Part shown: in pieces, positions 544 through 38,529 of the stretch
How the letters are laid out: every line of letters begins with the position of its first letter
How positions within the stretch are numbered: the first letter of the stretch is position 1
Assembly: GCA_950097015.1 (NCBI GenBank)
Contig: CATNEN010000007.1
Coordinates: 2,108,001-2,172,000 of the forward strand
Direction of reading: 5' to 3'
Length of the DNA stretch: 64,000 nt
Source: Macrostomum hystrix
Lineage: Eukaryota; Animalia; Platyhelminthes
Translations under genes and position numbers: made by a program
The notes under the pieces: generated by a model
Told to the model about the DNA's origin: nothing
What the model saw: only the letters and a program-made list of their open reading frames with translations
Database searches by the model: none

Positions 544-2380
544 TCAAAGCAGGCTGCAGGTGCATGAGTTGCTTCTGTAATGCAATTGGGAAGAGAGTTT
601 CAAAATTGTTCCTCCAAACGCTGACAATGAAATTCCAAGGAGCCTTCTCACCTGTTGCTGCCGCTAGGAGCAGCAATGCCCCGCTGGTACTCCTGCTCAG
701 CCAGCCAGAGCGGCTCAAAGTAGTTCCTGCTCGCCCAACCTGGCGTGAACGCCATCACCTCCAGTAACTGCTCCTTGGCCACCTGCCGCTGAAGCGCCGT
801 CAGTGCGGCACCGTTGGTTCGAATCCCAAGCGCCGTGATAGTCTCCTCCACCGAGCTGAACCTCAGGAAGGCGTTGCCCTGCTCACCGTTGGGCAGGGTG
901 CCCACCTCGACGAACCAGGGTCTGAGGCGGTGAGGGCAGCGCGTTCATCAACTCAGAATATTGTGGTCCCCACAGTCTCATCGTCATCACTCAATACTCG
1001 TTTCGCTTCCTCCTTCCTCTCTCCCCACCAACAATGGGGAGTTGTCTGTTGAGGAAAATGGGAGTTTAATGGGGAGCTGTCTCTTGAGGAAAATGGGAGT
1101 TTAATGGGGAGCTGTCTCTTGAGGAAAATGGGAGTTTAATGGGGAGTTGTCTGTTGAGGAAAATGGGAGTTTAATGGGGAGCTGTCTCTTGAGGAAAATG
1201 GGAGTTTAATGGGGAGTTGTCTCTTGAGGAAAATGGGAGTCTAATGAGGAGTTGTCTCTTGAGGAAAATGGGAGTTTAATGGGAAGTTGTCTCTTGAGGA
1301 AAATGGGAGTCTAATGAGGAGTTGTCTCTTGAGGAAAATGGGAGTCTAATGAGGAGTTGTCTCTTGTGGAAAATGGGAGTTTAATGGGGAGTTGTCTCTT
1401 GAGGAAAATGGGAGTTTAATGGGGAGTTGTCTCTTGAGGAAAATGGGAGTTTAATGGGGAGTTGTCTCTTGAGGAAAATGGGAGTCTAATGAGGAGTTGT
1501 CTCTTGAGGAAAATGGGAGTTTAATGGGGAGTTGTCTCTTGAGGAAAATGGGAGTTTAATGGGGAGTTGTCTCTTGAGGAAAATGGGAGTTTAATGGGGA
1601 GTTGTCTCTTGAGGAAAATGGGAGTCTAATGAGGAGTTGTCTCTTGAGGAAAATGGGAGTTTAATGGGGAGTTGTCTCTTGAGGAAAATGGGAGTCTAAT
1701 GAGGAGTTGTCTCTTGAGGAAAATGGGAGTTTAATGGGGAGTTGTCTCTTGAGGAAAATGGGAGTCTAATGAGGAGTTGTCTCTTGAGGAAAATGGGAGT
1801 TTAATGGGGAGTTGTCTCTTGAGGAAAATGGGAGTTTAATGGGGAGTTGTCTCTTGAGGAAAATGGGAGTTTAATGGGGAGTTGTCTCTTGAGGAAAATG
1901 GGAGTTTAATGGGGAGTTGTCTCTTGAGGAAAATGGGAGTCTAATGAGGAGCTGTCTCTTGAGGAAAATGGGAGTCTAATGAGGAGTTGTCTCTTGAGGA
2001 AAATGGGAGTCTAATGGGGAGTTGTCTCTTGAGGAAAATGGGAGTCTAATGAGGAGTTGTCTCTTGAGGAAAATGGGAGTCTAATGAGGAGTTGTCTCTT
2101 GAGGAAAATGGGAGCTTGATGAGGAGTTACTGAGGGCTCACACTGCATCGGGCGGCAGTTTCTTAGCAAACTGAATGACAAACAGCCTTTCACTGTAGGT
2201 CGTGCTGGCATAGTTGGCATAGTCCGTCAGGCTATTTGGTATGCAGTCGTGTACATCGTTGACACACTTCAGGTAGTACATGAGGCGGCCGATACTGCTG
2301 CGGGGAACCTCCGCTGTGCTGCTGGTGTCTTCAACATGCAACTGGCGATTGCGCACCAGAGCGAGAGCTGCACCAGACAT
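544..2380 (-). CDS. Small CaaX-terminated protein family, copy 1 (intact, 179 aa, 3 exons)
   Basis: Exons 2380-2142 (MSGAAL...QLHVE...RLMYYLKC...PPDA), 921-652 (PWFVEV...TITALGIR...EVMAF...RNYFEPL) and 574-544 (RSNSCTCSLL*). All introns are GT-AG and phase 2, the frame is continuous, and the structure matches four paralogs in the window. Confidence 0.82.
1035..2130. repeat. 35-bp minisatellite (GAGGAAAATGGGAGTTTAATGGGGAGTTGTCTCTT) in intron 1 of family copy 1
   Basis: About 30 tandem units with few variants (TTT/TCT, GGG/GAG). Confidence 0.95.
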
Positions 2381-2795
2381 GGCTATTGCCAGTTGTTGCT
2401 GCAAACAATTTGTCTCCTCGTATTTTGCGCAGTTCGCCCAGACAGTTAAAAGGAAAGCTGGCAAGTCCATTATCTAATGAACTCATTCGATATCTCATGA
2501 TTGCTTTAATAGGTAACCTTGGCAACTTGGAGTCTTCTTATCTCCATGTCTGTTGCGCCATTAATTTCGCTAAATAGGTCTCAAAATTTGGCTGAGACGA
2601 CAGTGTCACCTGACTGAAATAATTGGCTAAAAAATTGACTTTCCAAGTACATAAAGAATATTCAGAGGACTGCAAGCACGCTCAGGGTTGGCTTGCCACT
2701 TCTCTTGCACGAAAGCAAAAAATTACTAGATAGCTTGTAGATTTTGAATATTAAAGTTTGAACGAGTATTCACTTGCTACTAATTGGGCCCTGAT

Positions 2796-4010
2796 CTAAC
2801 TAGACCCATCCTAGCTAGACCCATTCTAACTAGACCCATCCTAACTAGACCCATCCTAGCTAGACCCATCCTAGCTAGACCCATCCTAGCTAGACCCATC
2901 CTAACTAGGCCCATCCTAGCTAGACCCATCCTAACTAGGCCCATCCCAGCTAGACCCATCCTAGCTAGACCCATCCTAGCTAGACCCATCCTAGATAGAC
3001 CCATCCTAACTAGACCCATCCTAGCTAGGCCCATCCTAGCTAGACCCATCCTAACTAGGCCCATCCCAGCTAGACCCATCCTAGCTAGACCCATCCTAGC
3101 TAGACCCATCCTAGATAGACCCATCCTAACTAGACCCATCCTAGCTAGACCCATCCTAGCTAGACCCATCCTAGCTAGACCCATCCTAGCTAGACCCATC
3201 CTAGCTAGACCCATCCTAGCTAGACCCATCCTAACTAGACCCATCCTAGCTAGACCCATCCTAACTAGACCCATCCTAACTAGATCCATCCTAACTAGAC
3301 CCATCCCTAACTAGACCCATCTATATTAGACCCATCCTAACTAGACCCATCCAAACTAGACCCATCCTAACTAGACCCATCCTAACTAGATCCATCCTAA
3401 CTAGATCCATCCTAAGTAGACCCATCCCTAACTAGACCCATCTATATTAGACCCATCCTAACTAGACCCATCCAAACTAGACCCATCCTAACTAGACCCA
3501 TCCTAACTAGATCCATCCTAACTAGACCCATCCCTAACTAGACCCATCTATATTAGACCCATCCTAACTAGACCCATCCAAACTAGACCCATCCTAACTA
3601 GACCCATCCTAACTAGACCCATCCTAACTAGACCCATCCTAGCTAGACCCATCCTAGCTAGACCCATCCTAGCTAGACCCATCCTAGCTAGACCCATCCT
3701 AACTAGACCCATCCTAGCTAGACCCATCCTAACTAGGCCCATCCTAGCTAGACCCATCCTAACTAGGCCCATCCTAGCTAGACCCATCCTAGCTAGACCC
3801 ATCCTAACTAGACCCATCCTAACTAGGCCCATCCTAGCTAGACCCATCCTAGCTAGACCCATCCTAGCTAGACCCATCCTAACTAGACCCATCCTAACTA
3901 GATCCATCCTAGCTAGACCCATCCTAGCTAGACCCATCCTAACTAGACCCATCCTAACTAGGCCCATCCTAACTAGACCCATCCTAACTAGACCCATCCT
4001 AGCTAGACCC
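2796..4010. repeat. 15-bp satellite (AGACCCATCCTARCT), left arm
   Basis: Homogeneous tandem array with AACT/AGCT unit variants. Confidence 0.97.
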
Positions 4011-7000
4011 AGCACCACTCGTGGAAAGCTCGGTCACAAATCTCAAAGCCGAGTAAGACCTACATACACTAACCTGACTACCAGCGGCCTCGCCGCATCT
4101 GCCAGCGGCCTCGCAGCTCCTGCCAGCGGCCTCGCCGCACCTACAAGCGACCTCACCGCACCTACCAGCGGCCTCGCCGCACCTACCAGCGGCCTCGCCG
4201 CACCTGCTAGCGGCCTCGCCGCACCTACCAGCGGCCTCGCCGCACCTGCTAGCGGCCTCGCCGCACCTGCCAGCGCCCTCGCCTCACCCACCAGCGGCCT
4301 CGCCGCATCTGCCAGCGGCCTCGCCGCACCTACCAGCGGCCTCGCCGCACCCACCAGCGGCCTCGCCGCAGCCACCAGCGGCCTCGCCGCACCCACCAGC
4401 GGCCTCGCCGCACCTGCCAGCGGCCTCGCCGCACCCACCAGCGGCCTCGCCGCACCTGCCAGTCCAGTCGGCTCTATCGCATTCGGTGTACCTAACCAAC
4501 AGGACGCTGTACAACAACTTATTGGCGCAATGGCTCAGATGATGCAGCAGAACCAGCTGCTCGTACAACAGCTTCACATAAACTAGACCACATCCCAGCC
4601 CGCCCCTCCGACGCCTCGACCGACGTCCCTCTTCGGCGACACCGTCCTCCGCAATGTTCAACTTCAAGGTTTCGACGGTGAAGACCCAGCTAGTTTCCCT
4701 GCATTTTGGAGTTCTTTCACTTACCGCATCGACAGCAGCAACTACACAGACGTCGATAAATTTGAAGCTCTTCGCGGGCTTCTCGCTGGCGCTGCCCTCC
4801 GGAAACTAGGTGGTCTGGACGCCTGTCAACCGGGGGCCTACAACCAAGCCTGCCAAATTCTCCAAGCTAATTATGGCGACCTGTGGGAGCAGAAGAGCAC
4901 CTGCTTCAGGCGACTTCTCGCGATGCCGCAGCTTTGCAACATCGACCACCAGAGCCTGGAGGAATTTTCAGACACACTTCGCCTCACAGTCGGCCAGCTA
5001 ACCCGCCTCGGTGAAACCAGTGCTGCCCTGGATCCCTACGTGCATGCACTGTGGCCAAAGCTCCCACCGGCGCTCCAATCAGATATCCAGGATGTGCGTT
5101 GTAAGGCGTTGCAACCGCTAATTCCAACAATGCAAGAGCTCCAGGGACACCTCGACAACAAGCTTCGTGCCATCCGTGCCTCGCAAACCAACTACGCAAC
5201 AGCTGCTTTCGCCCCCTATGCCGGAGCTAGTCTAATCAACGCTGCCACAAACCGCTCCGTAACTTCATCCACTCCGAGTGCTGGTCACGTGCACACACGT
5301 GCACATGCACCGATCTGCGTCTACTGCGAACGGTCAGGACACTCCAGTCAGACATGCGGCGTAATTTCGAAGCCCGATGATCGGCTCCGCATTATTCGAA
5401 GCAAGGCCCTGTGCCTCAACTGCCTGCGTAGCCATGCCACCTCAAACTGTAGCTCCCGGAACAGATGCCGCGAGTGTCGAGCATTGCACCACACATCACT
5501 TCACGGAGCGCGTTTCAATCCACCACCGCATGTTCTTCACGTCGACTCAACAGCGAAAGCCAACAGCAACCTCGACTCGACGACCGCATTGCCGACGGCA
5601 TTCGCCAACTTAAAAGCCATGAACGATAACACCATCAATACCGTCTCCTGCATCTCCTCCACCTGCGACGAGTTGATAAGACCATCCATCATGGCCACAT
5701 TCTCTGCCACTGCTGTAAACCCGACTAGCGGCGGAACTACGCGAGTGTCGGTCCTCATCGATGGCGGCTGCAGTTTCACGTACATAAAACTCGATGTGGC
5801 TCGAAAACTCGGTCTTCGTTTACATCGCCGAATCTCGCTTGACAGCTCTTCATGTCACACCAACTCTCGACGCCGAGTGACCGCAGACATCGTCGAACTC
5901 GAACTCTCAACACCCGATGGCCGCCGTTTACCACTCCGAGTTCTGGCAACCGAGCACATCGCTCCACCAATCCACATACCAGCTGTCCAGCTACCAAGTG
6001 ATATTCTGGCCACTCTGCAACACTTGCCCCATGGAATAGCCAATCTCCCAACTTCCCAAGACGGGGAACTTGAGTTAGATTTGCTCATCGGTAACGACTA
6101 TGCTCAGCGGTTAATAGGCCCGAGCGTTCCTGCAATCCCACTGCGGCCAAGTCTTACCGCGCACCTCACCCCGTTTGGTGCCGTCCTCACAGGCTGCCTC
6201 GAAAATACCGACGATTGTAAATCCAGTGGGCTTCTCAACTCTAGTCAACTCATCGCCAACTCACTTCTGTCACAATCCCGTCCCGACAACCTTGAATGTC
6301 TGGTCGACCGAATGACCAGCCTCGAGCTGCTCGGCATCGAAAGAGGGGCCGAACAACCCAATCCACGAGGCGACGTTTTGACGAAAGACCTCCTGGACTC
6401 GGCCACACGTGGATCGGACGGTCGTTACTCGGTCGCATTACCCTTCAAGCCTGGAGCGGAGCAACTCCCATCAAACTTCGGACAAGCTTGGGGTCGCGCT
6501 CAGGCTACACACCGTCGTCTTTCACAGGCGGAACGTCAAGAGTACTATGGAGAGTTTGAAAAGCACAAAGCAGAAGGGATCCTGGAAATCGTCGATGACA
6601 CTAGTCCAAAAGGAAAGATCATCCATGTCCTGTCACACTTTCCCGTCATCAAGATGTCTTCAAACACCACAAAAGTACGACCAGTTATAGACGCCTCAGC
6701 GCCAACATCTCTAGGGGGCGTCTCTCTCAACGACCTCATGGAGTCTGGGCCAAACTTGCTCACCAACCTCTTCAAGGTTCAGCTACGTCTCCGAACCTCA
6801 AAGTTTATCTGCCTCAGCGACATCCAGGCCGCCTTTTACCAAGTACTCATGCACGAGTATTGTCGGGACGCCCAACGTGTTATCCTACCCAAAAACATCG
6901 ACCTGCCGCTTACACGTGACAATTTCCAAGTCTGGCGCTTCACCCGTATCGTCATGGGAGCCAGATCATCACCGTGGATCCTTGCCGCCGTCATTCGGAA

Positions 7001-8387
7001 ACTCTGCCTGGATGCCATGGATTCCGGAAAATCAGGTCTTAGCTCTCGACAGCTTGAGCAGCTACCCTACAGCCTCTATGTCGACAACTTGGTCCAGGGC
7101 TATGACGTTCAAGAAGAGGGCCCACGTATCGTTGCCGCAACCCGAGCTCTCTTCCGATCCGCTGGGTTTCACCTCCGCCAGTTTGCCGCCAGTGACCCAG
7201 GAGCGCTCTGCGACGTGCCCTGGGCAGATCAGATCCACGAACCAGTCGTCAAGAGCCTCGGAATCCTCTGGGACACACAGAGTGACCAACTGAGCCTGGC
7301 CAGTCCACAGCTGAAATTGGACCCTAATCTCAACCGGGCCAGTCTTCTTAAGGGAATCTCTACGCCATACGACCCGTGCGGTTACGCAGCGCCCCTGCTT
7401 CTAGCTGGACGTCTTCTATATCACGAAAGCTTCGGTCCTATGGATGCATGGAACAAGCCTGCCTCAACCGATACTGTTGAGAGCTGGCGCAGACTCCTCA
7501 ATGATTTCAACGAGATCTGCCGTATTACCGTTCCTCGTCGCTGCCTCGCAGACCAGGCACTACCCAGTAGGCTCGTGATCTTCAGCGACGCCTCACCTCG
7601 AGCTTACGGGTACACAACTTACCTGCATCAGAATGGGAAGGACCTCACCAACTGCTGCCTCATCAACGCCAAGGCCCGCCTCGCTCCATCTGGCCGCAAG
7701 AATGTACTCATCACGGTTCCTCGCCTTGAGCTCTGGGTCGCATTAATCGCCAACCGAGCCGCGATTTTCCTACGCGACTCCTTTAACCTAGGCAAGAGGC
7801 TCAGTGGCATAACCCACTTCATGGACAGTCAGATAGTCCTACACTGGATCCACAATGGGGCCAAGCTCCGTCCCTATGAGGCCCGCCGCGTTCAGGAGAT
7901 CTTGGAGTCCAACCTGACTGACGACTACCGCTACGTCAACACCGCTGAGAACCCTGCCGATTGTTGCACAAGGCCACTTACACTCAGCCAACTTCTTAAT
8001 TCAAATTTCTTCACCGGACCTCGATTCCTCCGACAGCCACATGGGGAGTGGCCATCTCAGACAACACCCACACCCACGAACTCCACGATTCTCCAAGGCA
8101 TCCCACCAGCCCAGAAAAAGACCAAGAAGACAAGCGCTTTCCTGTCTGCATCGAACAGATGCGCCCCCCTGCAGACATGGATATCAACCGCTTCGGCAAA
8201 CTCAGTGCCCTTCTCGGAACTCTCGCATACGTTATCCGTTTCGTCAAGCGAAGAAACCGAGTCACCGCGCCAGATGCCTCGGAACGCCAGGCTGCTCTTC
8301 ACTTGTGGATCAAATGGGTACAGAGAGAGCGCTACGCTGACGCAATCAATGCCATACAGGAAGGCAGACCCAAAAGCTGCAAGATAG
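4011..8387 (+). pseudogene. BEL/Pao gag-protease-RT-RNase H frame (premature TAG at 4584-4586)
   Basis: Frame open from the satellite junction. Motifs: Gag FDGEDPASFPAFWSSF...DKFEALRGLLAG; knuckles CVYCERSGHSSQTC, CLNCLRSHATSNC, CRECRALHHTSLH; protease VLIDGGCSFTYI; RT RPVIDAS, DIQAAFYQV, YVDNL; RNase H FSDAS, VPRLEL, DSQIVLHWI, NPADCCTR. Confidence 0.9.
4080..4460 (+). repeat. 21-bp coding tandem repeat in Gag (T/A-SGLAAP heptads)
   Basis: CCAGCGGCCTCGCCGCACC(T/C)(A/G) repeated about 18 times, in frame with gag. Confidence 0.9.
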
Positions 8388-9823
8388 TCGCGCAGCTTGA
8401 CCTCTTCTTGGATGACGAAGGTCTGATCCGCCTCAATTCCCGCATGGCAAACGCAACCTTAGACGCAGACGCAATCTACCCAATGCTCCTTCCACCCGAT
8501 CATCATCTCACTCACCTGCTCATACTCTACTTCCACAAACGAGATTGCCACAGCAGCGCCATATCTGTTCTACGGAGCCTTCGCGACCGTTTCTGGATTG
8601 TCCGTGGTCTCTCCACTGTCCGCTCAAGCCTCCGCCAGTGTCTTCCATGCCGATTCACGAAGGGACGCACACTCCCTCCCCCACAGCATGGCCAGCTACC
8701 ACCAGAGCGCCTCAACTCATCAGGCCCTGCGTTCAGCTCTCTGCTCGTCGACCAGCTGGGCCCCGTCTTGACGACCGATACGAAGACCCGCACTATCAAC
8801 AAACGATGGGCAATGCTCCTCTGTTGCGCCTCAAGCCGCGCGGTCCATCTCGAGTACCTCCATGACTATTCTGCGGACTCAGTTCTCCATGCTTTCGAGC
8901 GATTCTGGGCCCGCCGGGGACTCACCGAAGCCAGCATCTTCCTAGACCAGGCAACCGCCTTCCAAGCGGCCGGCAAAATCATCGACTCTCTGCTAACACC
9001 AACGTTCCAGCACAAACTCCTAGCTGACCTCAAACCATTCGCCACTGCTAGACAACTCCACTTCAAATTCGCACCGGCACGCGCTCCGTGGCACCAAGGA
9101 GCCGTCGAGCGACTGGTTGGGATGGTCAAAGCCAGCCTTCGACCCGCACTTTGGCGCCGGCGGATCTCGGACGAAGAGTTCCTCACCCTGCTGACAAAGA
9201 TCGAGGCTGTCTTGAACTCTCGCCCGCTGACATCTTTCTCGAATGACCCTAGCGATACGCGCCCCCTAACGCCAGCCGATCTCATCGCTCCTAGCGCTCG
9301 ACTTGACTTGCCTGCAGCGCCTGAGCACCTTTTTCCATCTGCCGGGACCACGACCAGCAACCAACTACGAGCTCTCTATCGACGCCGCGAGCAAATCATT
9401 GACGCTTTCTGGGCGCGATGGAACCGCGACTACATTCAACAACTCCACTCGATCCACTTACAACACCGTAGACGACACGGCGAGCACTCACACCAGCCCC
9501 TCGTTGGACAGCTCTACCTCCTCGCCGACCAGACTCCGCGGTCAAACTGGAAGACGTGCCGCGTCATCGAAGTCCATCCCGACAGTCATGATATCACCCG
9601 TTATTTCACTGTCCGAACGAGCACCGGTCACGAGTCCCGCCGTGCCATCACGCATCTCGTCCCTCTCGAGGCCGACATTATCGATTTCCAGACCGCGGCC
9701 AACGCCGGCAGGACTCTAGTTCCACCCGGTTCTGGCAGCAAGGACGATCCGGTACAAACCAACCGCGCTCGACGGGCCATGCGACGACAACTTCTACGTG
9801 ACTCTCCTTTTAACATTGCGTAA
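8048..9823 (+). CDS. BEL/Pao integrase portion (frameshifted relative to the upstream pol frame)
   Basis: DINRFGKL..LAYVIRF linker, H-H-C-C zinc motif (FHKRDCH...CLPC), DDE core (VDQLGP, DQATAF, GAVERLVG) and C-terminal FWARWNRDY. Confidence 0.9.
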   Translation: MAISDNTHTHELHDSPRHPTSPEKDQEDKRFPVCIEQMRPPADMDINRFGKLSALLGTLAYVIRFVKRRNRVTAPDASERQAALHLWIKWVQRERYADAINAIQEGRPKSCKIVAQLDLFLDDEGLIRLNSRMANATLDADAIYPMLLPPDHHLTHLLILYFHKRDCHSSAISVLRSLRDRFWIVRGLSTVRSSLRQCLPCRFTKGRTLPPPQHGQLPPERLNSSGPAFSSLLVDQLGPVLTTDTKTRTINKRWAMLLCCASSRAVHLEYLHDYSADSVLHAFERFWARRGLTEASIFLDQATAFQAAGKIIDSLLTPTFQHKLLADLKPFATARQLHFKFAPARAPWHQGAVERLVGMVKASLRPALWRRRISDEEFLTLLTKIEAVLNSRPLTSFSNDPSDTRPLTPADLIAPSARLDLPAAPEHLFPSAGTTTSNQLRALYRRREQIIDAFWARWNRDYIQQLHSIHLQHRRRHGEHSHQPLVGQLYLLADQTPRSNWKTCRVIEVHPDSHDITRYFTVRTSTGHESRRAITHLVPLEADIIDFQTAANAGRTLVPPGSGSKDDPVQTNRARRAMRRQLLRDSPFNIA

Positions 9824-9840
9824 CTTCGCCCCCCCCACCC

Positions 9841-10155: not shown

Positions 10156-11235
10156 AGGCCCATCCTAGCTAGACCCATCCTAGCTAGACCCATCCTAGCT
10201 AGACCCATCCTAACTAGACCCATCCTAACTAGGCCCATCCTAGCTAGACCCATCCTAGCTAGACCCATCCTAGCTAGACCCATCCTAACTAGGCCCATCC
10301 TAACTAGACCCATCCTAACTAGACCCATCCTAGCTAGACCCATCCTAGCTAGACCCATCCTAGCTAGACCCATCCTAGCTAGACCCATCCTAGCTAGACC
10401 CATCCTAACTAGGCCCATCCTAGCTAGACCCATCCTAGCTAGACCCATCCTAGCTAGACCCATCCTAACTAGACCCATCCTAACTAGGCCCATCCTAGCT
10501 AGACCCATCCTAGCTAGACCCATCCTAACTAGACCCATCCTAACTAGGCCCATCCTAACTAGACCCATCCTAACTAGACCCATCCTAACTAGACCCATCC
10601 TAGCTAGACCCATCCTAACTAGACCCATCCTAACTAGGCCCATCCTAGCTAGACCCATCCTAGCTAGACCCATCCTAGCTAGACCCATCCTAGCTAGACC
10701 TATCCTAACTAGACCCATCCTAGCTAGACCCATCCTAACTAGGCCCATCCTAGCTAGACCCATCCTAGCTAGACCCATCCTAACTAGACCCATCCTAACT
10801 AGGCCCATCCTAGCTAGACCCATCCTAGCTAGACCCATCCTAACTAGACCCATCCTAACTAGACCCATCCTAACTAGGCCCATCCTAGCTAGACCCATCC
10901 TAGCTAGACCCATCCTAGCTAGACCCATCCTAGCTAGACCCATCCTAACTAGACCCATCCTAGCTAGACCCATCCTAACTAGACCCATCCTAGCTAGACC
11001 CATCCTAACTAGGCCCATCCTAGCTAGACCCATCCTAGCTAGACCCATCCTAACTAGACCCATCCTAACTAGACCCATCCTAACTAGATCCATCCTAACT
11101 AGACCCATCCCTAACTAGACCCATCTATATTAGACCCATTCTAACTAGACCCATCCATACTCGTAACTAGACCCATCGTAACTAGACCCATCCGTAACTA
11201 GACCCATCCGTAACTAGACCCATCCCTAACTAGAT
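10156..11235. repeat. 15-bp satellite, right arm
   Basis: Same unit as 2796-4010, degenerating at about 11140-11235. Confidence 0.97.
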
Positions 11236-11974
11236 GTCGCTAAATATTCTATCTCCAAATAAACCCTTTCCTAAAGACCAATGCACTAAATGACAGCAGG
11301 AGAAGGTATATACTAGTAGGCATTTACCTTCGTCGGCCATTTCTGCGCATCTTGAAAAATGCGCTAGTATATTTTTCCATCTCTTTCGACTGTAGGTTTC
11401 ACAACGCCCATCAGCACATCCGCATACGTGCTTCTCTTGACCTTCAAAATAAACAGACTGAGTTGCTGCACAAGCAGGTGGCAGATCTTATCTTTTGCAA
11501 CTTGGCGTCACGCCTCTGTCTCTTCGTTTCTACTCGAATACTTTAACAAATAGACTTTTGTTTCAGGGCTGCAAGCCGCGGAAAAGTCCAGAGATTTCAA
11601 TAGAGGGCCACTCTCTATTGATAAGTATGAGATTAACACTATTTGAGTTACTCGTAACAATTGAATAGTTGCATTTTTACGACCTCAGCCTTATAAAACT
11701 GGGATGGAATTCACGCTTCAATGATTTTGTTTTTCCATTTTGCAGCCATGTGTTTTATTACTCGTATATTAGGTTTTTATTTTTTTGGTCTATCCTTAAT
11801 TTTGCTATTTAGATGGTGCAGTGACTTAAAAACATCAGAATTCTATACCTGAGTCTGAGTTGTGAGACACGACTCAAATTGAGAAAATAGGTCATAAACT
11901 CAGTCATTTTATTACCTATTTAAGAGATGATTCTCAAGAGAAAAGCAGCTGACAGCTTATCTCAACTCCAGAAC

Positions 11975-12735
11975 ACTTCTTAACCATGCGTTCTTTTTGC
12001 ATGTGATCTTTGGCTGATGAGTGGCAGAGCGGTTAACACTTCTTAACCATGCGTTCTTTTTGCATGTGATCTTTGGCTGATGAGTGGCAGAGCGGTTAAC
12101 ACTTCTTAACCATGCGTTATTTTTGCATGTGATCTTTGGCTGATGAGTGGCAGAGCGGATAACACTTCTTAACCATGCGTTCTTTTTGCATGTGATCTTT
12201 GGCTGATGAGTGGCAGAGCGGATAACACTTCTTAACCATGCGTTCTTTTTGCATGTGATCTTTGGCTGATGAGTGGCAGAGCGGATAACACTTCTTAACC
12301 ATGCGTTCTTTTTGCATGTGATCTTTGGCTGATGAGTGGCAGAGCGGATAACACTTCTTAACCATGCGTTCTTTTTGCATGTGATCTTTGGCTGATGAGT
12401 GGCAGAGCGGATAACACTTCTTAACCATGCGTTCTTTTTGCATGTGATCTTTGGCTGATGAGTGGCAGAGCGGTTAACACTTCTTAACCATGCGTTCTTT
12501 TTGCATGTGATCTTTGGCTGATGAGTGGCAGAGCGGTTAACACTTCTTAACCATGCGTTCTTTTTGCATGTTATCTTTGGCTGATGAGTGGCAGAGCGGA
12601 TAACACTTCTTAACCATGCGTTCTTTTTGCATGTGATCTTTGGCTGATGAGTGGCAGAGCGGTTAACACTTCTTAACCATGCGTTCTTTTTGCATGTGAT
12701 CTTTGGCTGATGAGTGGCAGAGCGGATAACACTTT
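11975..12735. repeat. 63-bp minisatellite containing a SINE A-box
   Basis: About 12 units of ACACTTCTTAACCATGCGTTCTTTTTGCATGTGATCTTTGGCTGATGAGTGGCAGAGCGG(T/A)TA. Confidence 0.95.
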
Positions 12736-12950
12736 TTTCACGCCCTTGAGGGTCAACCATCAAGGCACACTGCCTGACAATGAGAAAGTCAGAGCATATG
12801 TACACACCTGTGTGAGCGAATGCCTGCGTTTGCATGTGCGCTCAGGAGTCAGCGAAATGGACAGAATTAATTGCCTCCTCGCTGGCTGCGGGTGCCGTGT
12901 CACCAAATGTGTCATTGCCCACAGCCCCTGTATTAATTATAAATTACTTG
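12712..12950 (+). mobile_element. tRNA-derived SINE family A, internally deleted copy
   Basis: GTGGCAGAGCGG head, then CACGCCCTTGAGGG...CTGCCTGACAATGAGAAAGTCAG...GGAGTCAGCGAAATGG...GTCACCAAATG matching the other copies. The B-box region is missing. Confidence 0.8.
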
Positions 12951-13417: not shown

Positions 13418-13999
13418 ATGCGTCGACGCAGAGCGAGCAGTCTGAAAAAGAGCCGAGACGCCAAGAGTAGGCGCCGGGAGGAAACGGACGCTCGACGAGA
13501 AGCCCGGCTGGAGAGGTGCCGGCAGCGAGCAGCTGAGCTCAGGGCCAATGAGTCGGCAGCTCGACGTGAAGCCCGGCTGGAGAGGTGCCGGCAGCGAACA
13601 GCTGAGCTCAGGGCCAATGAGTCGGCAGCTCGACGAGAAACCCGGCTGGAGAGGTGCCGGCAGCGAGCAGCTGAGCTCAGGGCCAATGAGTCGGCAGCTC
13701 GACGAGAAACCCGGCTGGAGAGGTGCCGGCAGCGAGCAGCTGAGCTCAGGGCCAATGAGTCGGCAGCTCGACGAGAAACCCGGCTGGAGAGGTGCCGGCA
13801 GCGAACAGCTGAGCTCAGGGCCAATGAGTCGGCAGCTCGACGAGAAACCCGGCTGGAGAGGTGCCGGCAGCGAGCAGCTGAGCTCAGGGCCAATGAGTCG
13901 GCAGCTCGACGAGAAACCCGGCTGGAGAGGTGCCGGCAGCGAGCAGCTGAGCTCAGGGCCAATGATTCGGCAGCTCGACGTGAAGCCCGAGACATTTGA
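13418..13999 (+). CDS. STPR-like 23-aa repeat protein (7 full repeats), possibly a Helitron-derived N-terminal fragment
   Basis: Repeat ESAARRETRLERCRQRAAELRAN (69 bp) is in register with the STPR pattern (E1, R9-L10, AA17-18, AN22-23). The ATG follows a polypyrimidine/AG acceptor. Confidence 0.6.
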   Translation: MRRRRASSLKKSRDAKSRRREETDARREARLERCRQRAAELRANESAARREARLERCRQRTAELRANESAARRETRLERCRQRAAELRANESAARRETRLERCRQRAAELRANESAARRETRLERCRQRTAELRANESAARRETRLERCRQRAAELRANESAARRETRLERCRQRAAELRANDSAARREARDI

Positions 14000-15887: not shown

Positions 15888-16316
15888 GCTTGGATTGTGT
15901 GCCGACTTTGCCTTGCTATGGCTTGGATACAACCGGAGTGTATTTGAGCTTAGGTCACTTGACAGACAGAGGAAATTCCAACTGTTATTTATGCTGAAAC
16001 TGACTGCTCATGAGCAATGACTCGAGAATCGCCGCCTGTTGGTTGCATCTCAGTCAAATTTGTTTTAATTGGCTCCTTGCGCTATAGTCATTACCTGTAG
16101 ATTCACGGAGATAGGGTAGAGAAAAATTTAACTTGTGCATTCTCATTGCAATAAACGGAGTGAAGAGCTGTTCGTGCAATCAACAAAAAGCTCCACATTT
16201 CAAGCGAAAAAGCTTGCGCACGAAGCTACGAGTATATATTTTTATGTGAAAGCGAAATTTATATTACATTACTTCGTTAATTTCAGCGCCGACACATCCA
16301 TACCCATTCAACATAT

Positions 16317-18381
16317 CTCCAATTAGACCCATCCCCAATTAGACCCATCCCCAATTAGACCCATCCCCAATTAGACCCATCCCCAATTAGACCCATCCTC
16401 AAATAGACCCATCCCCAATTAGACCCATCCCCAATTAGACCCATCCCCAATTAGACCCATCCCCAATTAGACCCATCCCCAATTAGACCCATCCTCAAAT
16501 AGACCCATCCCCAATTAGACCCATCCCCAATTAGACCCATCCCCAATTAGACCCATCCCCAATTAGACCCATCCCCAATTAGACCCATCCCCAATTAGAC
16601 CCATCCCCAATTAGACCCATCCCCAATTAGACCCATCCTCAATTAGACCCATCACCAATTAGACCCATACCCAATTAGATCCATCCCCGATTAGATCCAT
16701 CACAATTAGACCCATCCCCAATTAGACCCATCAACAAATAGACCCATCCCCGATTAGATCCATCACAATTAGACCCATCCTCAAATAGACCCATCCCCAA
16801 TTAGACCCATCACCAATTAGACCCATACCCAATTAGATCCATCCCCGATTAGATCCATCACAATTAGACCCATCCCCATTTGACCCATCCCCAATTAGAT
16901 CCATCCCAATTAGACCTATCCCAATTAGACCCATCCCAAGTAGACCCATACCCAATTAGACCCAATTCCAATTAGACCCATCCCCATTAGACCCATCCTC
17001 AAATAGACCCATCCTTAATTAGACCCATCCCAAATAGATCCATCCCCAATTAGACCCATCCTCAAATAGACCCATCCCCATTTGACCCATCCCCAATTAG
17101 ATCCATCCCCAATTAGACCCATCCCCAATTAGATCCATCCCCAATTAGATCCATCCCCAATTAGACCCATCCGCAATTAGATCCATCCCAATTAGACCTA
17201 TCCCAATTAGACCCATCCCCAGTTAGACCCATCCCCAATTAGACCCATCCCCAGTTAGACCCATCCTCAAATAGACCCATCCCCAATTAGATCCATCCCC
17301 AATTAGACCCATCCGCAATTAGATCCATCCCAATTAGACCTATCCCAATTAGACCCATCCCCAGTTAGACCCATCCCCAATTAGACCCATCCCCAGTTAG
17401 ACCCATCCTCAAATTGACCCATCCCCAATTAGACCCATCCCCAATTAGACCCATCCCCAGTTAGACCCATCCCCAGTTAGACCCATCCCCAGTTAGACCC
17501 ATCCCCAGTTAGACCCATCCCCAAATAGACCCATCCCAAATAGATCCATCCCCAATTAGACCCATCCTCAAATAGACCCATCCCCAATTAGACTCATCCC
17601 CAATTAGATCCATCCCCAATTAGACCCATCCGCAATTAGATCCATCCCAATTAGACCTATCCCAATTAGACCCATCCCCAGTTAGACCCATCCCCAATTA
17701 GACCCATCCCCAGTTAGACCCATCCTCAAATAGACCCATCCCCAATTAGACCCATCCCCAATTAGACCCATCCCCAGTTAGACCCATCCCCAGTTAGACC
17801 CATCCCCAGTTAGACCCATCCCCAGTTAGACCCATCCCCAAATAGACCCATCCCAAATAGATCCATCCCCAATTAGATCCATCCCAATTAGACCTATCCC
17901 AATTAGACCCATCCCAAGTAGACCCATACCCAATTAGACCCTATTCCAATTAAACCCGTCCCCATTAGACCCATCCTCAAATAGACCCATCCCCAATTAG
18001 ACTCATCCTCAAATAGACCCATCCCCAATTAGACTCATCCTCAAATAGACCCATCCCCAGTTAGACCCATCCTCAAATAGACCCATCCCCAGTTAGACCC
18101 ATCCTCAAATAGACCCATCCCCAGTTAGACCCATCCTCAAATAGACCCATCCCCAGTTAGACCCATCCTCAAATAGACCCATCCCCAATTAGACCCATCC
18201 CCAGTTAGACTCATCCTCAAATAGACCCATCCCCAGTTAGACCCATCCTCAAATAGACCCATCCCCAATTAGACCCATCCCCAGTTAGACCCATCCTCAA
18301 ATAGACCCATCCCCAATTAGACCCATCCCCAGTTAGATTCATCCCCAATTAGACTCATCCCCAATTAGACCCATCCCCATA
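16317..18381. repeat. 16-bp satellite (AGACCCATCCCCAATT)
   Basis: Over 2 kb tandem array with variant units (CCTCAAAT, CCCCAGTT, 15-bp deletion forms). Confidence 0.97.
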
Positions 18382-19524: not shown

Positions 19525-19608
19525 AATAATAATTGCAGGAGGGCTGCGGCCTATGGCACATCATTCGGTGACACTAGACCCGCAGCCAGCGAGGAGGCAA
19601 TTCTGTGC
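19525..19608 (-). mobile_element. SINE family A 3' fragment
   Basis: Reverse complement of the SINE-A tail (GAATTGCCTCCTCGCTGGCTGCGGGTCTAGTGTCACC...CCTCCTGCAATTATT). Confidence 0.8.
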
Positions 19609-20562
19609 TCTCCCATGCCTCATCTCTCCCGTGTCCAATCTCTCCCGTGTCTCATCTCTCCCGTGTCTCATCTCTCCCGTGTCTCATCTCTCCCGTGTCT
19701 AATCTCTCCCGTGCCTCATCTCTCCCGTGTCCAATCTCTCCCGTGTCTCATCTCTCCCGTGTCTAATCTCTCCCGTGCCTCATCTCTCCCGTGTCCAATC
19801 TCTCCCGTGTCTCATCTCTCCCGTGTCTCATCTCTCCCGTGTCTCATCTCTCCCGTGTCTCATCTCTCCCGTGTCTCATCTCTCCCGTGTCTCATCTTTC
19901 CCGTGTCTAATCTCTCCCGTGCCTCATCTCTCCCGTGTCCAATCTCTCCCGTGTCTCATCTCTCCCGTGTCTCATCTCTCCCGTGTCTCATCTCTCCCGT
20001 GTCCAATCTCTCCCGTGTCTCATCTCTCCCGTGTCTCATCTCTCCCGTGTCTCATCTCTCCCGTGTCTCATCTCTCCCGTGTCTCATCTCTCCCGTGTCT
20101 CATCTTTCCCGTGTCTCATCTCTCCCGTGTCTCATCTCTCCCGTGTCTCATCTCTCCCGTGTCTAATCTCTCCCGTGTCTAATCTCTCCCGTGTCTCATC
20201 TCTCCAGTGTCTCATCTCTCCCGTGTCTCATCTCTCCCGTGTCTAATCTCTCCCGTGTCTCATCTCTCCCGTGTCTCATCTCTCCCGTGTCTCATCTCTC
20301 CCGTGTCTCATCTCTCCCGTGTCTCATCTCTCCCGTGTCTAATCTCTCCCGTGTCTCATCTCTCCCGTGTCTCATCTCTCCCGTGTCTCATCTCTCCCGT
20401 GTCTCATCTTTCCCGTGTCTCATCTCTCCCGTGTCTCATCTCTCCCGTGTCTCATCTCTCCCGTGTCTCATCTCTCCCGTGTCTCATCTCTCCCGTGTCT
20501 CATCTCTCCCGTGTCTCATCTCTCCCGTGTCTCATCTCTCCCGTGTCTCATCTCTCCTCTAT
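19609..20562. repeat. 16-bp satellite (TCTCATCTCTCCCGTG)
   Basis: About 59 tandem units. Confidence 0.97.
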
Positions 20563-21032: not shown

Positions 21033-21890
21033 TCAGAGTACAGCACACCCGGACCTTCTGAAACGCATTTGGAGCTCGTGAATGAGAAAAATTAATATTG
21101 GTTTGAGCACTCAGGGTGTCAGTGTCAGGAATGCAAAGCTAGTTTTTTAACCGAATTTATGTATTGTAAGCCCCGCGTTAGCCTCGTCAAATTTCGCAAT
21201 TGGATGAGCTCTCTTGCACCAGATTCTACAGGCGTAATACGATTTCAGCGTTGAAAATTTGAGCCTACTCACCTCTGGCCCTGCATCTCGGCCCGAATGG
21301 CCATCAGGGGGTTCAGGTAGTTCCTATTCAGCCACTGCTGCGTGTAAGCCATGACCTCAATCAGCTTCTGCTTGTTGCCCACCTGCCGCTGAAGTGCCAT
21401 CATTTCGGCGCCACCAGATCGAATGCCCAGAGCGGTGACAGTCTGCTCCAGCGAGGAGAACTTGAGGAACATGTTCGAATTGCCATCGGGCAGATTGGAC
21501 ACCGGGATAAACAGAGGTCTGTTCATTGATTAGGTAATTTCACTTGAAAAATCAAAAGAATTCAAACGACTGAGGCTCGAAAATCTTATCTTACATAATT
21601 TACAACCTGACAATTAGTCCTTTGGGTACGTTATACGATGCGACTCACACTTTGTCCGGTGTGAGCTCACATGCCAGGCGAATCACCAGCAGCCTTTCGC
21701 TTCTGTCCAGGCTAGAGTACCTGCTGTAGTTCGTTAGCTTCTCCGGAACGCAGTCATCGAGGAGGCAGGAGATGCAGCGCAAATAGTACATCAGGCGAGC
21801 CATGTTGTCGTCTGGAACGGTTGCACTGACAGAGCTGTCTTCAACATGCAGCTGATTGCTTTGGAATCTAGCCAGCGCAGCCTGACTCAT
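21033..21890 (-). CDS. Small CaaX-terminated protein family, copy 3 (intact, 170 aa)
   Basis: Exons 21890-21649, 21518-21273 and 21057-21033, with phase-2 introns. Ends EMQGQRRSGCAVL*. Confidence 0.85.
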
Positions 21891-23248: not shown

Positions 23249-24094
23249 ATGGATCAGGCCACACTGGCCAGGTTTCACAATCATCAATTACACGTTGAAG
23301 CATCAGGTACCAGTGCCGCTGTGCCAGATGACAATGTGGCCCGCCTGATGTACTATTTGCACTGCATCTCCTGTTTGCTGGATGGCTGTGTTCCTACAAA
23401 TCTCACAAACTACAGCGGCTGCTTGTGATTCGCCTGGCCTGTGAGCTCCGGCCAGACAAAGTGTGATTCACGTTGAGTACAGACATTGGTCTATCAGAGT
23501 ACAGACATTGGTCTATCAGAGTACAGACATTGGTTTATCAGAGTACAGACATTAGTCTATCAGAGTACAGACATTGGTCTATCAGAGTACAAAAGTTGGC
23601 CTATCAGAGTACAGACATCAGAGTCTATCAGAGTACAAAAGTTGGCCTATCAGAGTACAGACATTGGTCTATCAGAGTCGATACAAAAACAGGCACGTCA
23701 CATTCACAAAAAAGCTGGCCGTTGTTCATCCCAGTGTCCAACCTTCCTGGTGGCAGCTCCACCGAGTTCTTCAAGTTCTCCTCTCTGAAGCAGACTGTGG
23801 GCTTTGGGAATTCGATCTGGTGGCGCCGAAATGATGACACTTCAGCAGCAGGTGGGCAACAAGCAGAAGCTGATTGAGGTCATGGCTTACACGCAGCAGT
23901 ATAGGCTGAATAGGAACTACCTGAACCCCTGATGGCCATTCGGGCCGAGATGCAGTCCCAGCGACGGTGAGTTTCTCTCAAAGCTTCTCTCACTTTAGTC
24001 GTCTATTGTATTTTTTATAATTAGCTCGTATTATTGAATGAATTCATGAGGTTTTCAACGGCCATGTATCCTCAGTTGCTGCACTCTGCTGTAA
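23249..24094 (+). pseudogene. Small CaaX-terminated protein family, copy 4 (inverted duplicate of copy 3, disrupted)
   Basis: 28-nt deletion in exon 1 (~23420), exon-2 acceptor reads CTG instead of CAG, and a 2-nt deletion at ~23800. Terminal exon 24076-24094 still encodes RCCTLL*. Confidence 0.8.
23474..23680. repeat. 22-bp minisatellite (CAGAGTACAGACATTGGTCTAT) in intron 1 of copy 4
   Basis: About 9 imperfect tandem units. Confidence 0.9.
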
Positions 24095-24939: not shown

Positions 24940-25560
24940 ATTTTGCCCGCGTCCCCGCTGCGGGAATCCGCTGGCTATGCAACTTCCTGGCTCATTGCCA
25001 TGCTGGCGTGAGCAGCTCTGCTCCTCGCGTTGTTTATCAACGATCTTCCTGACCAGCTGCTCAACGACTGCACACCGTCGCTTTGCGTGGATGATCTGGT
25101 CATCGTAGTCGAGGGCCTGACCATGGAGGGGGCGGAGACAAAAGCACAACAGGCCATGGACTCAGTATCCGAGTGGTCAGTTGTCAGGATCCATCACCGA
25201 ATTGCTGGCACCGAACAAGTTCGCCGCTTCGTTTTTCACGACCACAGCCCGGGAGGTCAGCCATGAACTTAAGCTCAACATGAACCGTCACCCACACAAG
25301 CGTCATACTAGACCGTCTATCTCCGACCGAGCCCGCGCTCGCTTGCGTCCTGTAAAAGGACGCGGAAAGGATTTTGAATTGGTGCAGTCCAGCAAAAACA
25401 GGGGAGCCAAGCAGAGCAACGTGCGCCAGCTCTACACGGTCTTCGTGCGCCCTGTCCTTGAGTACGCCGCCGGTGCCTGGATGTTAGCAGCATGTAATAC
25501 GGCTATCGACTATCTGGACCAGGCACAGCACTAAGGCGCGCGCAGCAGCGCCGGATGCCC
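24940..25560 (+). mobile_element. Decayed non-LTR (LINE) reverse transcriptase fragment
   Basis: Remnant motifs IRWLCNFL, LFINDLPD...SLCVDDLVI and LYTVFVRPVLEYAAGAW, broken by deletions and frameshifts. Confidence 0.7.
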
Positions 25561-25732
25561 ACGGAGCACGAGCGCGGAAATGCTTGGCCGCGCAGCTGAC
25601 GATGACTCTTTGTCCAGAGACAACCAACTGCGCGACTGTGCTTTTAGCGACGGCCCGCGCCGCCGGCTTGGGCTGACGCGAAAAACCACTAAGGACTAGC
25701 AACGGCCTCCCTTGCGAAAGCATCCGCGCTGT

Positions 25733-27210
25733 TCCGATGTCACCTCACTATTTACCAATGTTCCGCTGAATCTGGCGATCGACATTGCTACCAATTTGGT
25801 CTTCAAAGACAACCCAGCGCCACCAATCCCGGAGAAAGTGTTTAAGAAATTGTTGGTTATTGCCACGTCTGGGATATTCCAATTCTGCGATAAGTACTTC
25901 CAGCAAATTGACGGCTGCGCTATGGGCAGCCCTCTTGCCCCCACTCTTGCTAACGTTTGCATGTCACATTGGGAGAAAACCTGGATGGAAAAAAGCTGTG
26001 TACTACTGTGTGCTCCGAAATTTTACAAACGGTATGTCGATGACACATGCGCTATTTTTGATAACGAGGAAGACTTTCTGCAATTTTTCAACACAATAAA
26101 CGCCACCCATCCTAACATTAAATTCACCGTGGAATATGGCGGATAGAAACTACCGTTCCTTGACATCGCGATCCATCTGAAGGACTGCGCTATTGAGACC
26201 GAAGTGTATCGCAAGCCCACATTCACTAACTTGATGCTTAATTTCCAGGCGATGTGCCGCAGGGAATGGAAGACGGGAGTCATTCGTTGTCTGCTTCATC
26301 GTGCCTATATAGAATGTTGCTCTTGGTCGTTGCTGCACAACAAGTTTACCAACATTATCAATATTCTCACTGCCAATGGATACCCTAGCAACTACATCAT
26401 GAAGGTTATTGGTAATTTCTTAGATGAAAAAATTGAAAAAAAGCTTAAACCTAAGTGGCCAGATAGAGAACCAGGAGAACCAATCTTGACTCTTCCTTTT
26501 TTGGGCAACTCTTCGATTGTGTTTAAGAGGCAAATTCGCAAAACTTGGCAAAAATTCTTTAAGACTAAGATTCATGTTGTGTTCCGTACTCATAAAGTCA
26601 GTCAATTTGTTGGGAGTTTAAAGTCTCGTGTTCCATGTGCTCTCAAGGCAGGTGTCATCTATCGTTTTCATTGCTCTGTTGACCAGAGCATTACCTACAT
26701 TGGTAAAACCAAGCGACACCTACTCACGAGAGCCAAGGAACATAGGCAACGAAACTCTCCGATTCATGAACATTTGCTGCAATGCCATGGTTGTTGTGAT
26801 GAGCCAGACATAACCTCTCATTTCAAGGTCATAGACAACAGCAAAAACGAGCATAAACTTAACATTCTTGAAGCTCTGCACATTAAGTTACACAAACCCA
26901 CTCTCAATGTCCAACTATCTGGAGGAGGTGCGAGTGAACAGCTGTTGGTGTTCTAGGCTAGAGTACATTTGGGGCGCATACGCCTCATTCTCTCTCTCTC
27001 TTTCTCTCTCCCTCTCTCTCTCTCTCTTTCTCTCAGTCCTGTCATTCGACAAAAATATTATGAACATTGCTATACTGTACATTGATCCTTTAGTCCTTTT
27101 ATATCTTTTCAATACCTGACTTTGTCGTCTACACAGTATTTAATAGGTTGAAATAAATTCTGTTCGATAGTGCCTGAAGATGGCTAGTTTTAGCCGAAAC
27201 GCGTCGCAAA
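25733..27210 (+). mobile_element. Penelope-like element (RT + GIY-YIG), 5'-truncated, one in-frame stop
   Basis: DVTSLFTNVP, QQIDGCAMGSPLAPTLAN, RYVDD, HPNIKFTVE, TAG at 26144-26146, LPFLD, VYRKPT; GIY-YIG GVIYRFHC...YIGKTKRHLLTRAKEH...LEALHI; ORF ends at 26956. Confidence 0.9.
27171..27208 (+). ncRNA. Minimal type I hammerhead ribozyme in the Penelope 3' tail
   Basis: TGC-CTGAAGA-T-GGCTA gttt TAGCC-GAAAC-GC-GTC-GCA: complete catalytic core, perfect stem II, palindromic ACGCGT stem III and GUC cleavage triplet. Confidence 0.8.
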
Positions 27211-27627
27211 TAATATTGAGTTTTGTCTTACTGTACCGTTTTAATCGTAAACATGCACGCATATATCTAGTTTCTGTAACTCACGCTAACATCCAAGTTG
27301 GAATGAATTTTCGTTTAAAACAAACTTTAGAACTCAAACTTTCAGACAAGAATAACACGATCCAACCATGGCTATCGAGTGACTGATGTCTACAATTGAA
27401 GTTTTGCTTTAACTTTGGACATTGCGTGCTTTTCATTGGGATTTCCATGGCTTTTTTGTATTTCTAGAGCCTATTCTTTAACAAAAGACCGATCCGTCTA
27501 ACAGTCTTAATTAACTAGTCAACATACTCGTATGCGAATTGCTCTATTACAAATTGTTTAGTGTCTTCATTTAGCTCCGAATTCCACGGCGATTCCGCGG
27601 GGCGTTTTCATGTGAGTCTGCTCACCG

Positions 27628-28883
27628 TCACAGTACAGCACATAAACACGAGCCTCTGAAACCAAACAGTTGATGATGCACAGATTTAATACGTAAGCAG
27701 AGCAAGGAAAGGTGTGACCGCAGCTCTTATGTACAAAAACTAGATCATGACTTGACATAACTAACACAGGCGACCCCTATAAGCCGTGAAGGCCATGATA
27801 CTCGTCAGCCGCTGCTTGTTTCCAGTTTCTCGCCTTATCGCCATGAATTCCTCCGAACCCTGCTTGAGGCCCAGGGCAGTCGTGATCTTGTCGACCGTTG
27901 AAAACTTGATGAACTCGTTGCCGCTGTTGTCAGGGAGGCTGTCAACTTCCACGAAATCACCAGACGCCTTCCTGTAGAACTAAGACCAAAGTGCTGCGGA
28001 AAGTTCACGCGATGTTACATGTTTCTGTGTGGTCTAAAGACTGCAGAATTCCTTAGACCGCTGCAAGAAGCATTTAAAATGCTATCTGAAATATTACAGC
28101 CGAATGTATCAGCGGCATGTATGAATTGGTGCACTGTTTCTGGTACAAAAGTGCATTTTCAGAAGATTCAGTGCAACATGAGGTTCAGATGATAAGGTTA
28201 GAATCAGCTCTCACATGACATGACAAATAGCACCGGATTGCAAAACAGACTCACATAGCATTTATAGAATAGTATCTACCCAACTGCAGGGGGTCGGTGG
28301 CAGAGCGGTTATCGCGTTTGCCTCTCGCACCACGGTCCCTAAGTTCGACTCCACGGCGAGGCCACATTTATTTGGAGCGCAGCCGCGGAGAGAAGGCTTG
28401 GGGGCTTGTGCAATTCGTGCAATTTACGCCCTTGAGGGCCAACCTCCAAGGCACAGTGAAATGTACACTGCCTGACGATGAGAAAGTCAGGGCAGATGTA
28501 CACACCTGTGTGAGCGTATGCCTGCGTACAGTATCTGAGTGCGTGTGCTCAGGAGTCAGCGAAATGGGCAGAATTGCCTCCTCGCTGGCTGCGGGTCTAG
28601 TGTCACTAAATGATGTGCCACTGCCCGCAGCCCTCCTGCAATTATTATTATTATTATTATCTACCCAACTGCAGTAAGTGGTGCTTCTCCTCTAGGCTGA
28701 GCTTGTCATAGTTGTTGTAGTCTGTGTAGACCTCGGGAAGCTGGCCGTCTCGCAGACAGAGCTCACGCAGCCCAGATAGTACATCATCCTGGCCACGCAG
28801 TTTTTCGGCACCGCAGTGTGCACTCCCGTCACTTCAGTGTGCAAATTTCTCGTCAGCTGGCGACCTACAGCAACCTGAGCCAT
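27628..28883 (-). pseudogene. Small CaaX-terminated protein family, copy 5 (disrupted)
   Basis: ATG at 28883; 1-nt frameshift near 28750; SINE inserted in exon 1; exon-1 remainder ends at donor 28255; exon 2 from 27971 lacks its 3' part; terminal exon 27655-27628 encodes GSCLCAVL*. Confidence 0.78.
28290..28657 (+). mobile_element. SINE family A, full length, inserted in coding exon 1 of copy 5
   Basis: A-box, B-box GTTCGACTCC, (ATT)n tail, and 17-bp TSD TATCTACCCAACTGCAG (28273-28289 / 28658-28674). Confidence 0.92.

Positions 28884-29623: not shown

Positions 29624-38529
<8,906 letters not shown>

Follow-up and report, generated by a model that had tools for sequence, protein, structure and literature searches.

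Proteins that end in a CaaX box with Leu (or Phe) in the last position are geranylgeranylated by geranylgeranyltransferase-I (GGTase-I), and this step is followed by proteolysis of -aaX and carboxymethylation. The small GTPases RhoA and Rap1b have tails of this kind, ending ...KKSGCLVL and ...KKSSCQLL, respectively, in which phosphorylation of a Ser near the Cys weakens membrane binding. To our knowledge, few proteins other than members of the Ras superfamily are anchored by a CaaX box, and distinct membrane biology has emerged from each of them. A family of small proteins with comparable tails is described here from a 64,000-nucleotide (nt) stretch of the flatworm Macrostomum hystrix (GenBank assembly GCA_950097015.1, contig CATNEN010000007.1, positions 2,108,001 to 2,172,000), referred to below as the window. 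Judged from its sequence, the family is a small tandem cluster of three functional genes (copies 1-3) and two decayed copies (copies 4 and 5). We give a probability of roughly two in three (0.68) to the reading that the three genes encode cytosolic proteins of 170-181 amino acids (aa), composed of a conserved domain and a lipid-anchor tail, and that geranylgeranylation keeps the domain, in a non-enzymatic role, at the cytosolic face of a membrane.

As in the Rho and Rap small GTPases, the CaaL box has an aliphatic residue in position a2 and is preceded by basic residues and a Ser near the Cys (QRRSGCAVL in copy 3, PKKSSTTCTLL in copy 2), a flexible tail follows a globular domain of about 150-170 aa, and GGTase-I is the expected enzyme. 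Unlike these GTPases, the flatworm proteins have no G domain, and their globular part is unrelated to them in sequence and predicted fold. By regular-expression search, copies 1-3 contained neither a P-loop (GxxxxGK[ST]) nor an NKxD motif, and there was no Pfam Ras match; the small-GTPase idea was rejected on these grounds. The tail-anchored and LITAF membrane proteins share with the family a cytosolic domain with an anchor at the extreme C-terminus, which in rotifer-type relatives of the flatworm proteins is a single hydrophobic helix and in one relative a LITAF zinc ribbon. They differ in that the flatworm genes would use a lipid and not a peptide anchor, and the known tail-anchored and LITAF families lack the N-terminal domain described here.

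Gene structure of copies 1-3

Six-frame translation and tblastn among the copies identified five homologous loci (expectation value, E, 1e-6 to 1e-26) and no sixth copy in the window. All five lie where a preliminary description of this DNA had placed them, they are clearly homologous, and the shared motifs that it listed are present in the copies. Its model of one conserved three-exon gene with phase-2 introns holds for copies 1-3, which have uninterrupted spliced open reading frames (ORFs) of 179, 181 and 170 aa ending in CSLL, CTLL and CAVL, respectively, and fails for copies 4 and 5, which are pseudogenes. All introns of copies 1-3 are GT-AG introns in phase 2, with GTGAG donors and (Y)nCAG acceptors.

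Copies 1-3 are all located on the minus strand. Copy 1 starts with an ATG at 2380, and its exon 1 (2142-2380) ends in the phase-2 donor GT/GTGAGC, the slash marking the junction. Intron 1 (922-2141) contains a 35-bp minisatellite, and exon 2 (652-921) lies between the acceptor ...cctcag and the phase-2 donor AG/GTGAGA. The coding start of the terminal exon, at 544-574 including the stop codon (547-574 without it), gives (R)SNSCTCSLL and a product of 179 aa ending ...SNRSNSCTCSLL, in which a second Cys stands two residues upstream of that of the CaaL box. In copy 2 the splice junctions were located for exon 1 (15652-15887) and exon 2 (14872-15153); the terminal coding start, 14529-14556 including the stop codon (14532-14556 without it), gives (K)SSTTCTLL with PKK before it, and the product of 181 aa ends ...SPKKSSTTCTLL. 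The junctions of copy 3 were likewise located (exon 1, 21649-21890; exon 2, 21273-21518). Here the terminal piece, 21033-21057 including the stop codon (21036-21057 without it), encodes (R)RSGCAVL, and the product of 170 aa ends ...GQRRSGCAVL.

The coding part of the terminal exon thus comprises 22-28 nt plus the stop codon. The tail had been described as lying on its own micro-exon, which is correct as far as the short coding piece is concerned. In its usual meaning the term does not fit the exon: AATAAA or ATTAAA signals occur 126-396 nt downstream of the terminal coding pieces, so that the last exon is probably a normal terminal exon that continues into a 3′ untranslated region (UTR), and an orthologue contig described below has a 3′ UTR of at least 440 nt.

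Counterparts in Macrostomum lignano

Relatives were sought by an exhaustive hidden Markov model search with a profile of exon 2 as the query, which returned full-length relatives. The nearest public proteins were those of Macrostomum lignano, with 70-77% identity. Two of them, P0011 and P0012, are listed at NCBI as 'hypothetical protein' and are encoded in tandem on NIVC01001794.1. Their annotation matches the gene models from the window, with three exons, phase-2 junctions and terminal coding pieces of 28 and 22 nt, and the proteins end in SSSGCTLL and SSGCSLL, respectively. Gene models of this family are therefore already public in the M. lignano annotation, as hypothetical proteins. A further contig, L001, from the assembly of a public read set, contains the complete ORF in one intron-free piece, preceded by an in-frame stop and followed by the long 3′ UTR mentioned above; in these features it is transcript-like and resembles a spliced mRNA. 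Its product, P0001, shares 77% identity with copy 3 and has the C-terminus GCVLL (CVLL). In the models of the copy 2 orthologues, P0002 and P0009 (UniProt A0A1I8J2K3 and A0A1I8HEV3), the reading frame continues past the last donor into the intron, and the CaaL tail is missing. Public annotation is corrected by this finding, as both UniProt models lack the terminal coding piece and their 'Ras-associating' name is unsupported.

The ratio of nonsynonymous to synonymous substitution rates (dN/dS) was obtained as Nei-Gojobori estimates on codon alignments. It was 0.14-0.19 for copy 3 versus P0001, P0011 and P0012, 0.26 for the M. lignano paralogues P0011 and P0012, and 0.31-0.48 among older paralogues, for which dS was near saturation. 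In the tree, copy 2 paired with P0002 and copy 3 with P0011/P0012, and the paralogue lineages therefore predate the species split. On these estimates the family is constrained by purifying selection and is old within Macrostomum. The earlier characterisation of the family as fast-diverging is contradicted both by the low dN/dS values of orthologues and paralogues and by the finding that copies 2 and 3 each have their own M. lignano counterpart.

The CaaL tail

The Cys in position -4 and the terminal Leu were kept in all six intact proteins of the Macrostomum clade and in both pseudogenes. The boxes CSLL, CTLL and CAVL of copies 1-3 and CVLL, CTLL and CSLL of P0001, P0011 and P0012 thus agree with the GGTase-I type of CaaX in having a Cys four residues from the C-terminus and a last Leu, and also in the aliphatic a2 residue (L, L and V in copies 1-3, L in P0001, P0011 and P0012). 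Neither a signal peptide nor a transmembrane segment was detected in copies 1-3; the maximum 19-aa hydropathy was 0.83-1.27 and the N-termini were hydrophilic. Beside the CaaL Cys, copies 2 and 3 and their orthologues carry (K/R)(K/R)-x-S-S/G, and in both AlphaFold models reported below the last 10-20 residues had low confidence (predicted local distance difference test, pLDDT, about 48-56), consistent with a flexible linker. The tail is accordingly a flexible, Ser-rich and slightly basic linker that ends in a CaaL box.

A possible course of events may be depicted as follows: GGTase-I, given X = Leu, would lipidate the Cys of the CaaL box, -aaL would then be trimmed by proteolysis and the Cys carboxymethylated, after which the domain would be held on the cytosolic leaflet of a membrane. 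In copy 1 a palmitoyl group may be added on the second Cys, which is a candidate site. By analogy with RhoA and Rap1b, the basic-Ser stretch beside the Cys could act as a phospho-switch. M. lignano is transgenic-tractable, and the lipid anchor is directly testable in this species. CaaX tags are mentioned among those tried for membrane targeting in M. lignano embryos (PMC12633465).

Distribution and C-terminal anchors of the relatives

The profile search, together with a metagenome scan for which a 6-sequence subset of an 18-sequence alignment served as the query, gave a family of 56 distinct sequences. The preliminary description had left the impression of a flatworm-only novelty, which did not stand, as the domain is also found in rotifers (including Rotaria sp.) and several groups of uncultured eukaryotes. 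Searches of viral contigs and of the genomes of bacteria and archaea detected no relative with a motif of the [ND]DVARLMY type.

A C-terminal membrane anchor of some kind is present in 40 of the 56 members, and the kind changes within clades. A CaaX-type box ends 25 sequences, spread over at least five clades, a tail-anchor helix ends 14, and one contains a LITAF domain. The CaaL ending characterises the Macrostomum clade, and a GC-rich, transcript-like clade ends in CLLA, CLIA or CLIM. The 13 members of a very AT-rich clade possess a Pro-rich linker and a Cys-cluster CaaX (CILF, CLIY, CSIF, CIII), and the single sequence that is sister to this clade is the one with the LITAF domain (E 4.6e-8). 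The rotifer-type clade, to which Rotaria sp. belongs, contains the 14 tail-anchor helices and a nested CaaX subclade (CTIS, CVIS). In the fungal-like clade (about 47% GC) the domain is joined to a ZZ finger (E 2.6e-10) and two SAP-like motifs, and one member ends in CVIA. Four fungal-like relatives (L036:764-2167, L038:522-1913, L039:1593-3065 and L044:704-1909) are composed of the domain, a Cys-rich stretch, a ZZ finger, two SAP/HeH-like motifs and a conserved C-terminal beta-rich piece, with no membrane anchor. Borderline PBZ fingers were seen in another relative, P0017.

The presence of membrane anchors in most members, with their kind changing within clades, is the strongest evidence obtained here that the flatworm CaaL box works as a membrane anchor. 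Since distant relatives end in other CaaX boxes, Cys-cluster CaaX, tail-anchor helices or LITAF, membrane anchoring of the flatworm proteins becomes much more likely, and the earlier suggestion of membrane-anchored proteins is strengthened. The exchange between CaaX, tail anchor and LITAF is also evidence for where the domain works.

On a 183-kb contig that encodes the rotifer-type relative P0019, which ends in CTIS, the next two downstream genes (L004:6001-9024) encode a 422-aa protein of no known type and a TIR_2-domain protein, with an overlap of a few bases between them; with one case only, this may be a coincidence.

The conserved domain

No Pfam match was obtained on the conserved region of about 150 aa, whether exon translations, full-length homologues or the 18-member alignment were searched. 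Pfam matches were confined to C-terminal extensions, with LITAF and ZZ above and PBZ and SAP below the threshold. Among PDB sequences nothing was found below E 0.05 with profiles of 18 and 41 sequences or with P0002 as the query, and a word-index protein search with the extended ORF of exon 1 gave no match.

AlphaFold2 was run on the 18-sequence alignment for P0001, the flatworm protein close to copy 3, and for the rotifer-type P0019, in place of the window proteins themselves. The models reached a pLDDT of 83.8 and a predicted template modelling score (pTM) of 0.74 for P0001, and a pLDDT of 86.9 and a pTM of 0.77 for P0019. Both display the same order of elements, namely a long N-terminal strand, four to five helices, a long beta-hairpin, a long C-terminal helix and a low-confidence tail, and the domain of about 150 aa is predicted to be of the alpha/beta type. 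Foldseek searches of the PDB with the two models had a best E of about 0.1 and template modelling (TM) scores below 0.2, and the BFVD viral structures contained no match at E 0.001 or below. Pfam, PDB sequences and Foldseek on the two models thus provided no confident match to a well-characterised family, which agrees with the original impression of proteins that have no recognisable domain and no GTPase motifs.

In an alignment of the 56 sequences, Y35, Y36, N96, M137 and P151 are invariant, and P26, A31, R32, L33, M34, L37, C39, L61, P78, F98, W143 and Y148 are conserved in at least 90%. These positions give the signature VPxxDVARLMYYLxC ... NxF ... M ... W ... Y..P. Conservation extends to all faces of the helix ARLMYYLxC, and aromatic residues make up the other invariant positions; no conserved catalytic set of the His/Asp/Ser type was found in this alignment. 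Because the strictly conserved residues are aromatic or aliphatic together with one Asn and one Arg, partner binding or oligomerisation is likelier than catalysis. On this conservation pattern, a non-enzymatic role as a binding or oligomerisation module seems most probable.

A broader proposal, put forward tentatively and at slightly less than even odds, is that the N-terminal 150 aa or so constitute an undescribed eukaryotic domain with a fold outside the PDB. It would be patchily distributed in flatworms, bdelloid rotifers and uncultured eukaryotes, would have been repeatedly re-tethered to the cytosolic membrane face by swappable anchors (geranylgeranyl or farnesyl CaaX, Cys-cluster, tail-anchor helix, LITAF), and would have been fused to ZZ- and SAP-like modules in a fungal-like lineage. 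If this is true, the near-invariant helix ARLMYYLxC would be the binding surface for a widely conserved partner. No paper describing the family was found in the literature, and the domain, its wide distribution, the absence of a known fold and the swapping of anchors appear undescribed. Although it has neither a Pfam family nor a relative among solved structures, the domain was modelled with confidence and has been maintained by purifying selection in several eukaryotic lineages. The family offers a new domain to curate, a structure to solve and a natural test case of substitution between lipid and peptide anchors.

Probable membrane anchoring and alternative explanations

From the tails, the relatives and the pattern of conservation we infer lipidation, a membrane location and a binding role, and the family is probably one of membrane-surface proteins. 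Several points speak against this interpretation. A fourth M. lignano paralogue, P0003, carries a C-terminus other than CaaX in its annotation, and P0002 and P0009 are modelled as read-through of the last donor, so the CaaL tail may be neither universal nor constitutive. Several relatives, namely the ZZ/SAP fusions and P0017, lack any membrane anchor, so that a membrane is not a requirement of the domain as such. The structure models were built from a shallow alignment of 18 sequences. The signature Cys is 91% conserved, and the term non-enzymatic is argued only from missing conserved residues of the catalytic type.

The same annotations bear on an alternative in which the genes are real and their products mainly soluble, the CaaL tail being optional or limited to a single isoform and the main product having no lipid anchor. 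The phase-2 GTGAG donors put an in-frame TGA at the first codon of the intron, and retention of the last intron would drop only the 7-10 residues of the tail and give a soluble form; P0003 without CaaX and the two read-through models point the same way, as do the fungal-like relatives, which are soluble multidomain proteins. An in-frame TGA is, however, the inevitable result of any GTGAG donor in phase 2 and may be incidental, whereas the CaaL box has been kept across species and paralogues under purifying selection and most relatives carry some membrane anchor. We therefore regard a mainly soluble family as unlikely. Another, quite improbable alternative concerns the domain, which might be a diverged COMM-like oligomerisation module, with three long strands and a helix beside a helical domain, that, like the COMMD proteins, would assemble on endomembranes into dimers or rings. 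COMMD proteins consist of a helical N-domain and a COMM domain and, unlike the family, carry no lipid or transmembrane anchor; the scores were below noise, the strand order appears to differ and there was no Pfam COMM match.

A membrane-attacking or immune effector family with long hairpins like those of pore formers, subject to birth-and-death evolution, would agree with the preliminary description's candidate defence module, for which no support was obtained, and would fit the tandem arrangement, the pseudogenes and the repeat-rich surroundings. Very weak Foldseek rows to PlyB, gasdermin, Cyt1A and volvatoxin (E 0.1-0.7) and the TIR-domain gene two genes from that of P0019 could be read in the same way. 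It is nevertheless very improbable, as the Foldseek TM-scores were below 0.2 with probabilities below 0.1, selection is purifying and not diversifying, and no secretion signal is present; PADLOC gave no match, the gene neighbourhood was uninformative and the TIR neighbour is a single case. The automatic UniRef name of A0A1I8J2K3 and A0A1I8HEV3, 'Ras-associating domain-containing protein', would make the proteins Ras/Rap effectors with a ubiquitin-like Ras-association (RA) domain. This database label of the two M. lignano entries is the only likeness to RA-domain proteins. There was no PF00788 match at E up to 1 for P0002 or up to 10 for the 18 members, no RA protein occurred among PDB sequence matches at E up to 10, and the models are not beta-grasp folds and retrieved no RA or ubiquitin-like chain in four fold searches. 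The RA label was rejected, and an RA domain is scarcely credible. Finally, chance ORFs or a transposon-derived repeat might be suspected in a region dense in satellites and retroelements. Against this, intron positions and annotated gene structure are shared with the M. lignano orthologues, the dN/dS values lie clearly below 1, the family extends to other phyla and no transposon domain was found. The conserved gene structure in M. lignano and the low dN/dS refute an artefact, the probability of which is negligible.

Pseudogenes and repeats in the window

Copy 4 (23249-24094, plus strand) is arranged head-to-head with copy 3, with which it shares 88% DNA identity in exon 2. Its exon remnants are found at 23249-23462, 23715-23966 and 24076-24094 (CCTLL). 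Exon 1 has an out-of-frame deletion of about 28 nt, and two frameshifts in exon 2 lead to in-frame stops. Copy 5 (27628-28883, minus strand) is further decayed, with remnants at 28660-28883, approximately 27785-27971 (truncated, no donor) and 27628-27655 (GSCLCAVL and stop). A 1-nt frameshift is located near 28746-28749 in exon 1, the donor and 3′-end of which have been replaced by an (AAT)n tract and a SINE-like insertion, and exon 2 is devoid of the W..NY..PL part and of any GT donor. A recognisable CaaL tail is present in all five copies, including the pseudogenes (CCTLL and CLCAVL), as the preliminary description had stated, but copies 4 and 5 are not genes.

The DNA of the window is eukaryotic and rich in repeats. 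Between copies 1 and 2, an apparently intact coding region of a BEL/Pao long terminal repeat retrotransposon is located at 4923-9823 (plus strand), with an ORF of 1154 aa (Pao peptidase A17, reverse transcriptase) and an overlapping ORF of 591 aa (integrase zinc-binding domain, DUF5641). Between copies 4 and 5 lies the remnant of a Penelope-like retroelement (25712-26956, plus strand), a reverse transcriptase fragment followed by a borderline GIY-YIG endonuclease ORF. A repeat of about 370 bp, resembling a short interspersed nuclear element (SINE), occurs with 77-92% identity in at least eight places, including 28290-28660, 15241-15598, 51150-51508, 31105-31427, 36422-36751 and 12737-12940; one of its copies lies within intron 1 of copy 2, and one replaces the 3′-end of exon 1 in copy 5. 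Eight large arrays of mini- and microsatellites, with repeat units 15-69 bp long that are present in up to 130 copies, were found at 1033-2128, 2796-4011, 10159-11234, 11972-12734, 13490-13989, 16315-18379, 19608-20557 and 23475-23678. The 35-bp array takes up intron 1 of copy 1, a 22-bp array lies in intron 1 of copy 4, and the 15-bp arrays at 2796-4011 and 10159-11234 share one unit and flank the BEL/Pao element.

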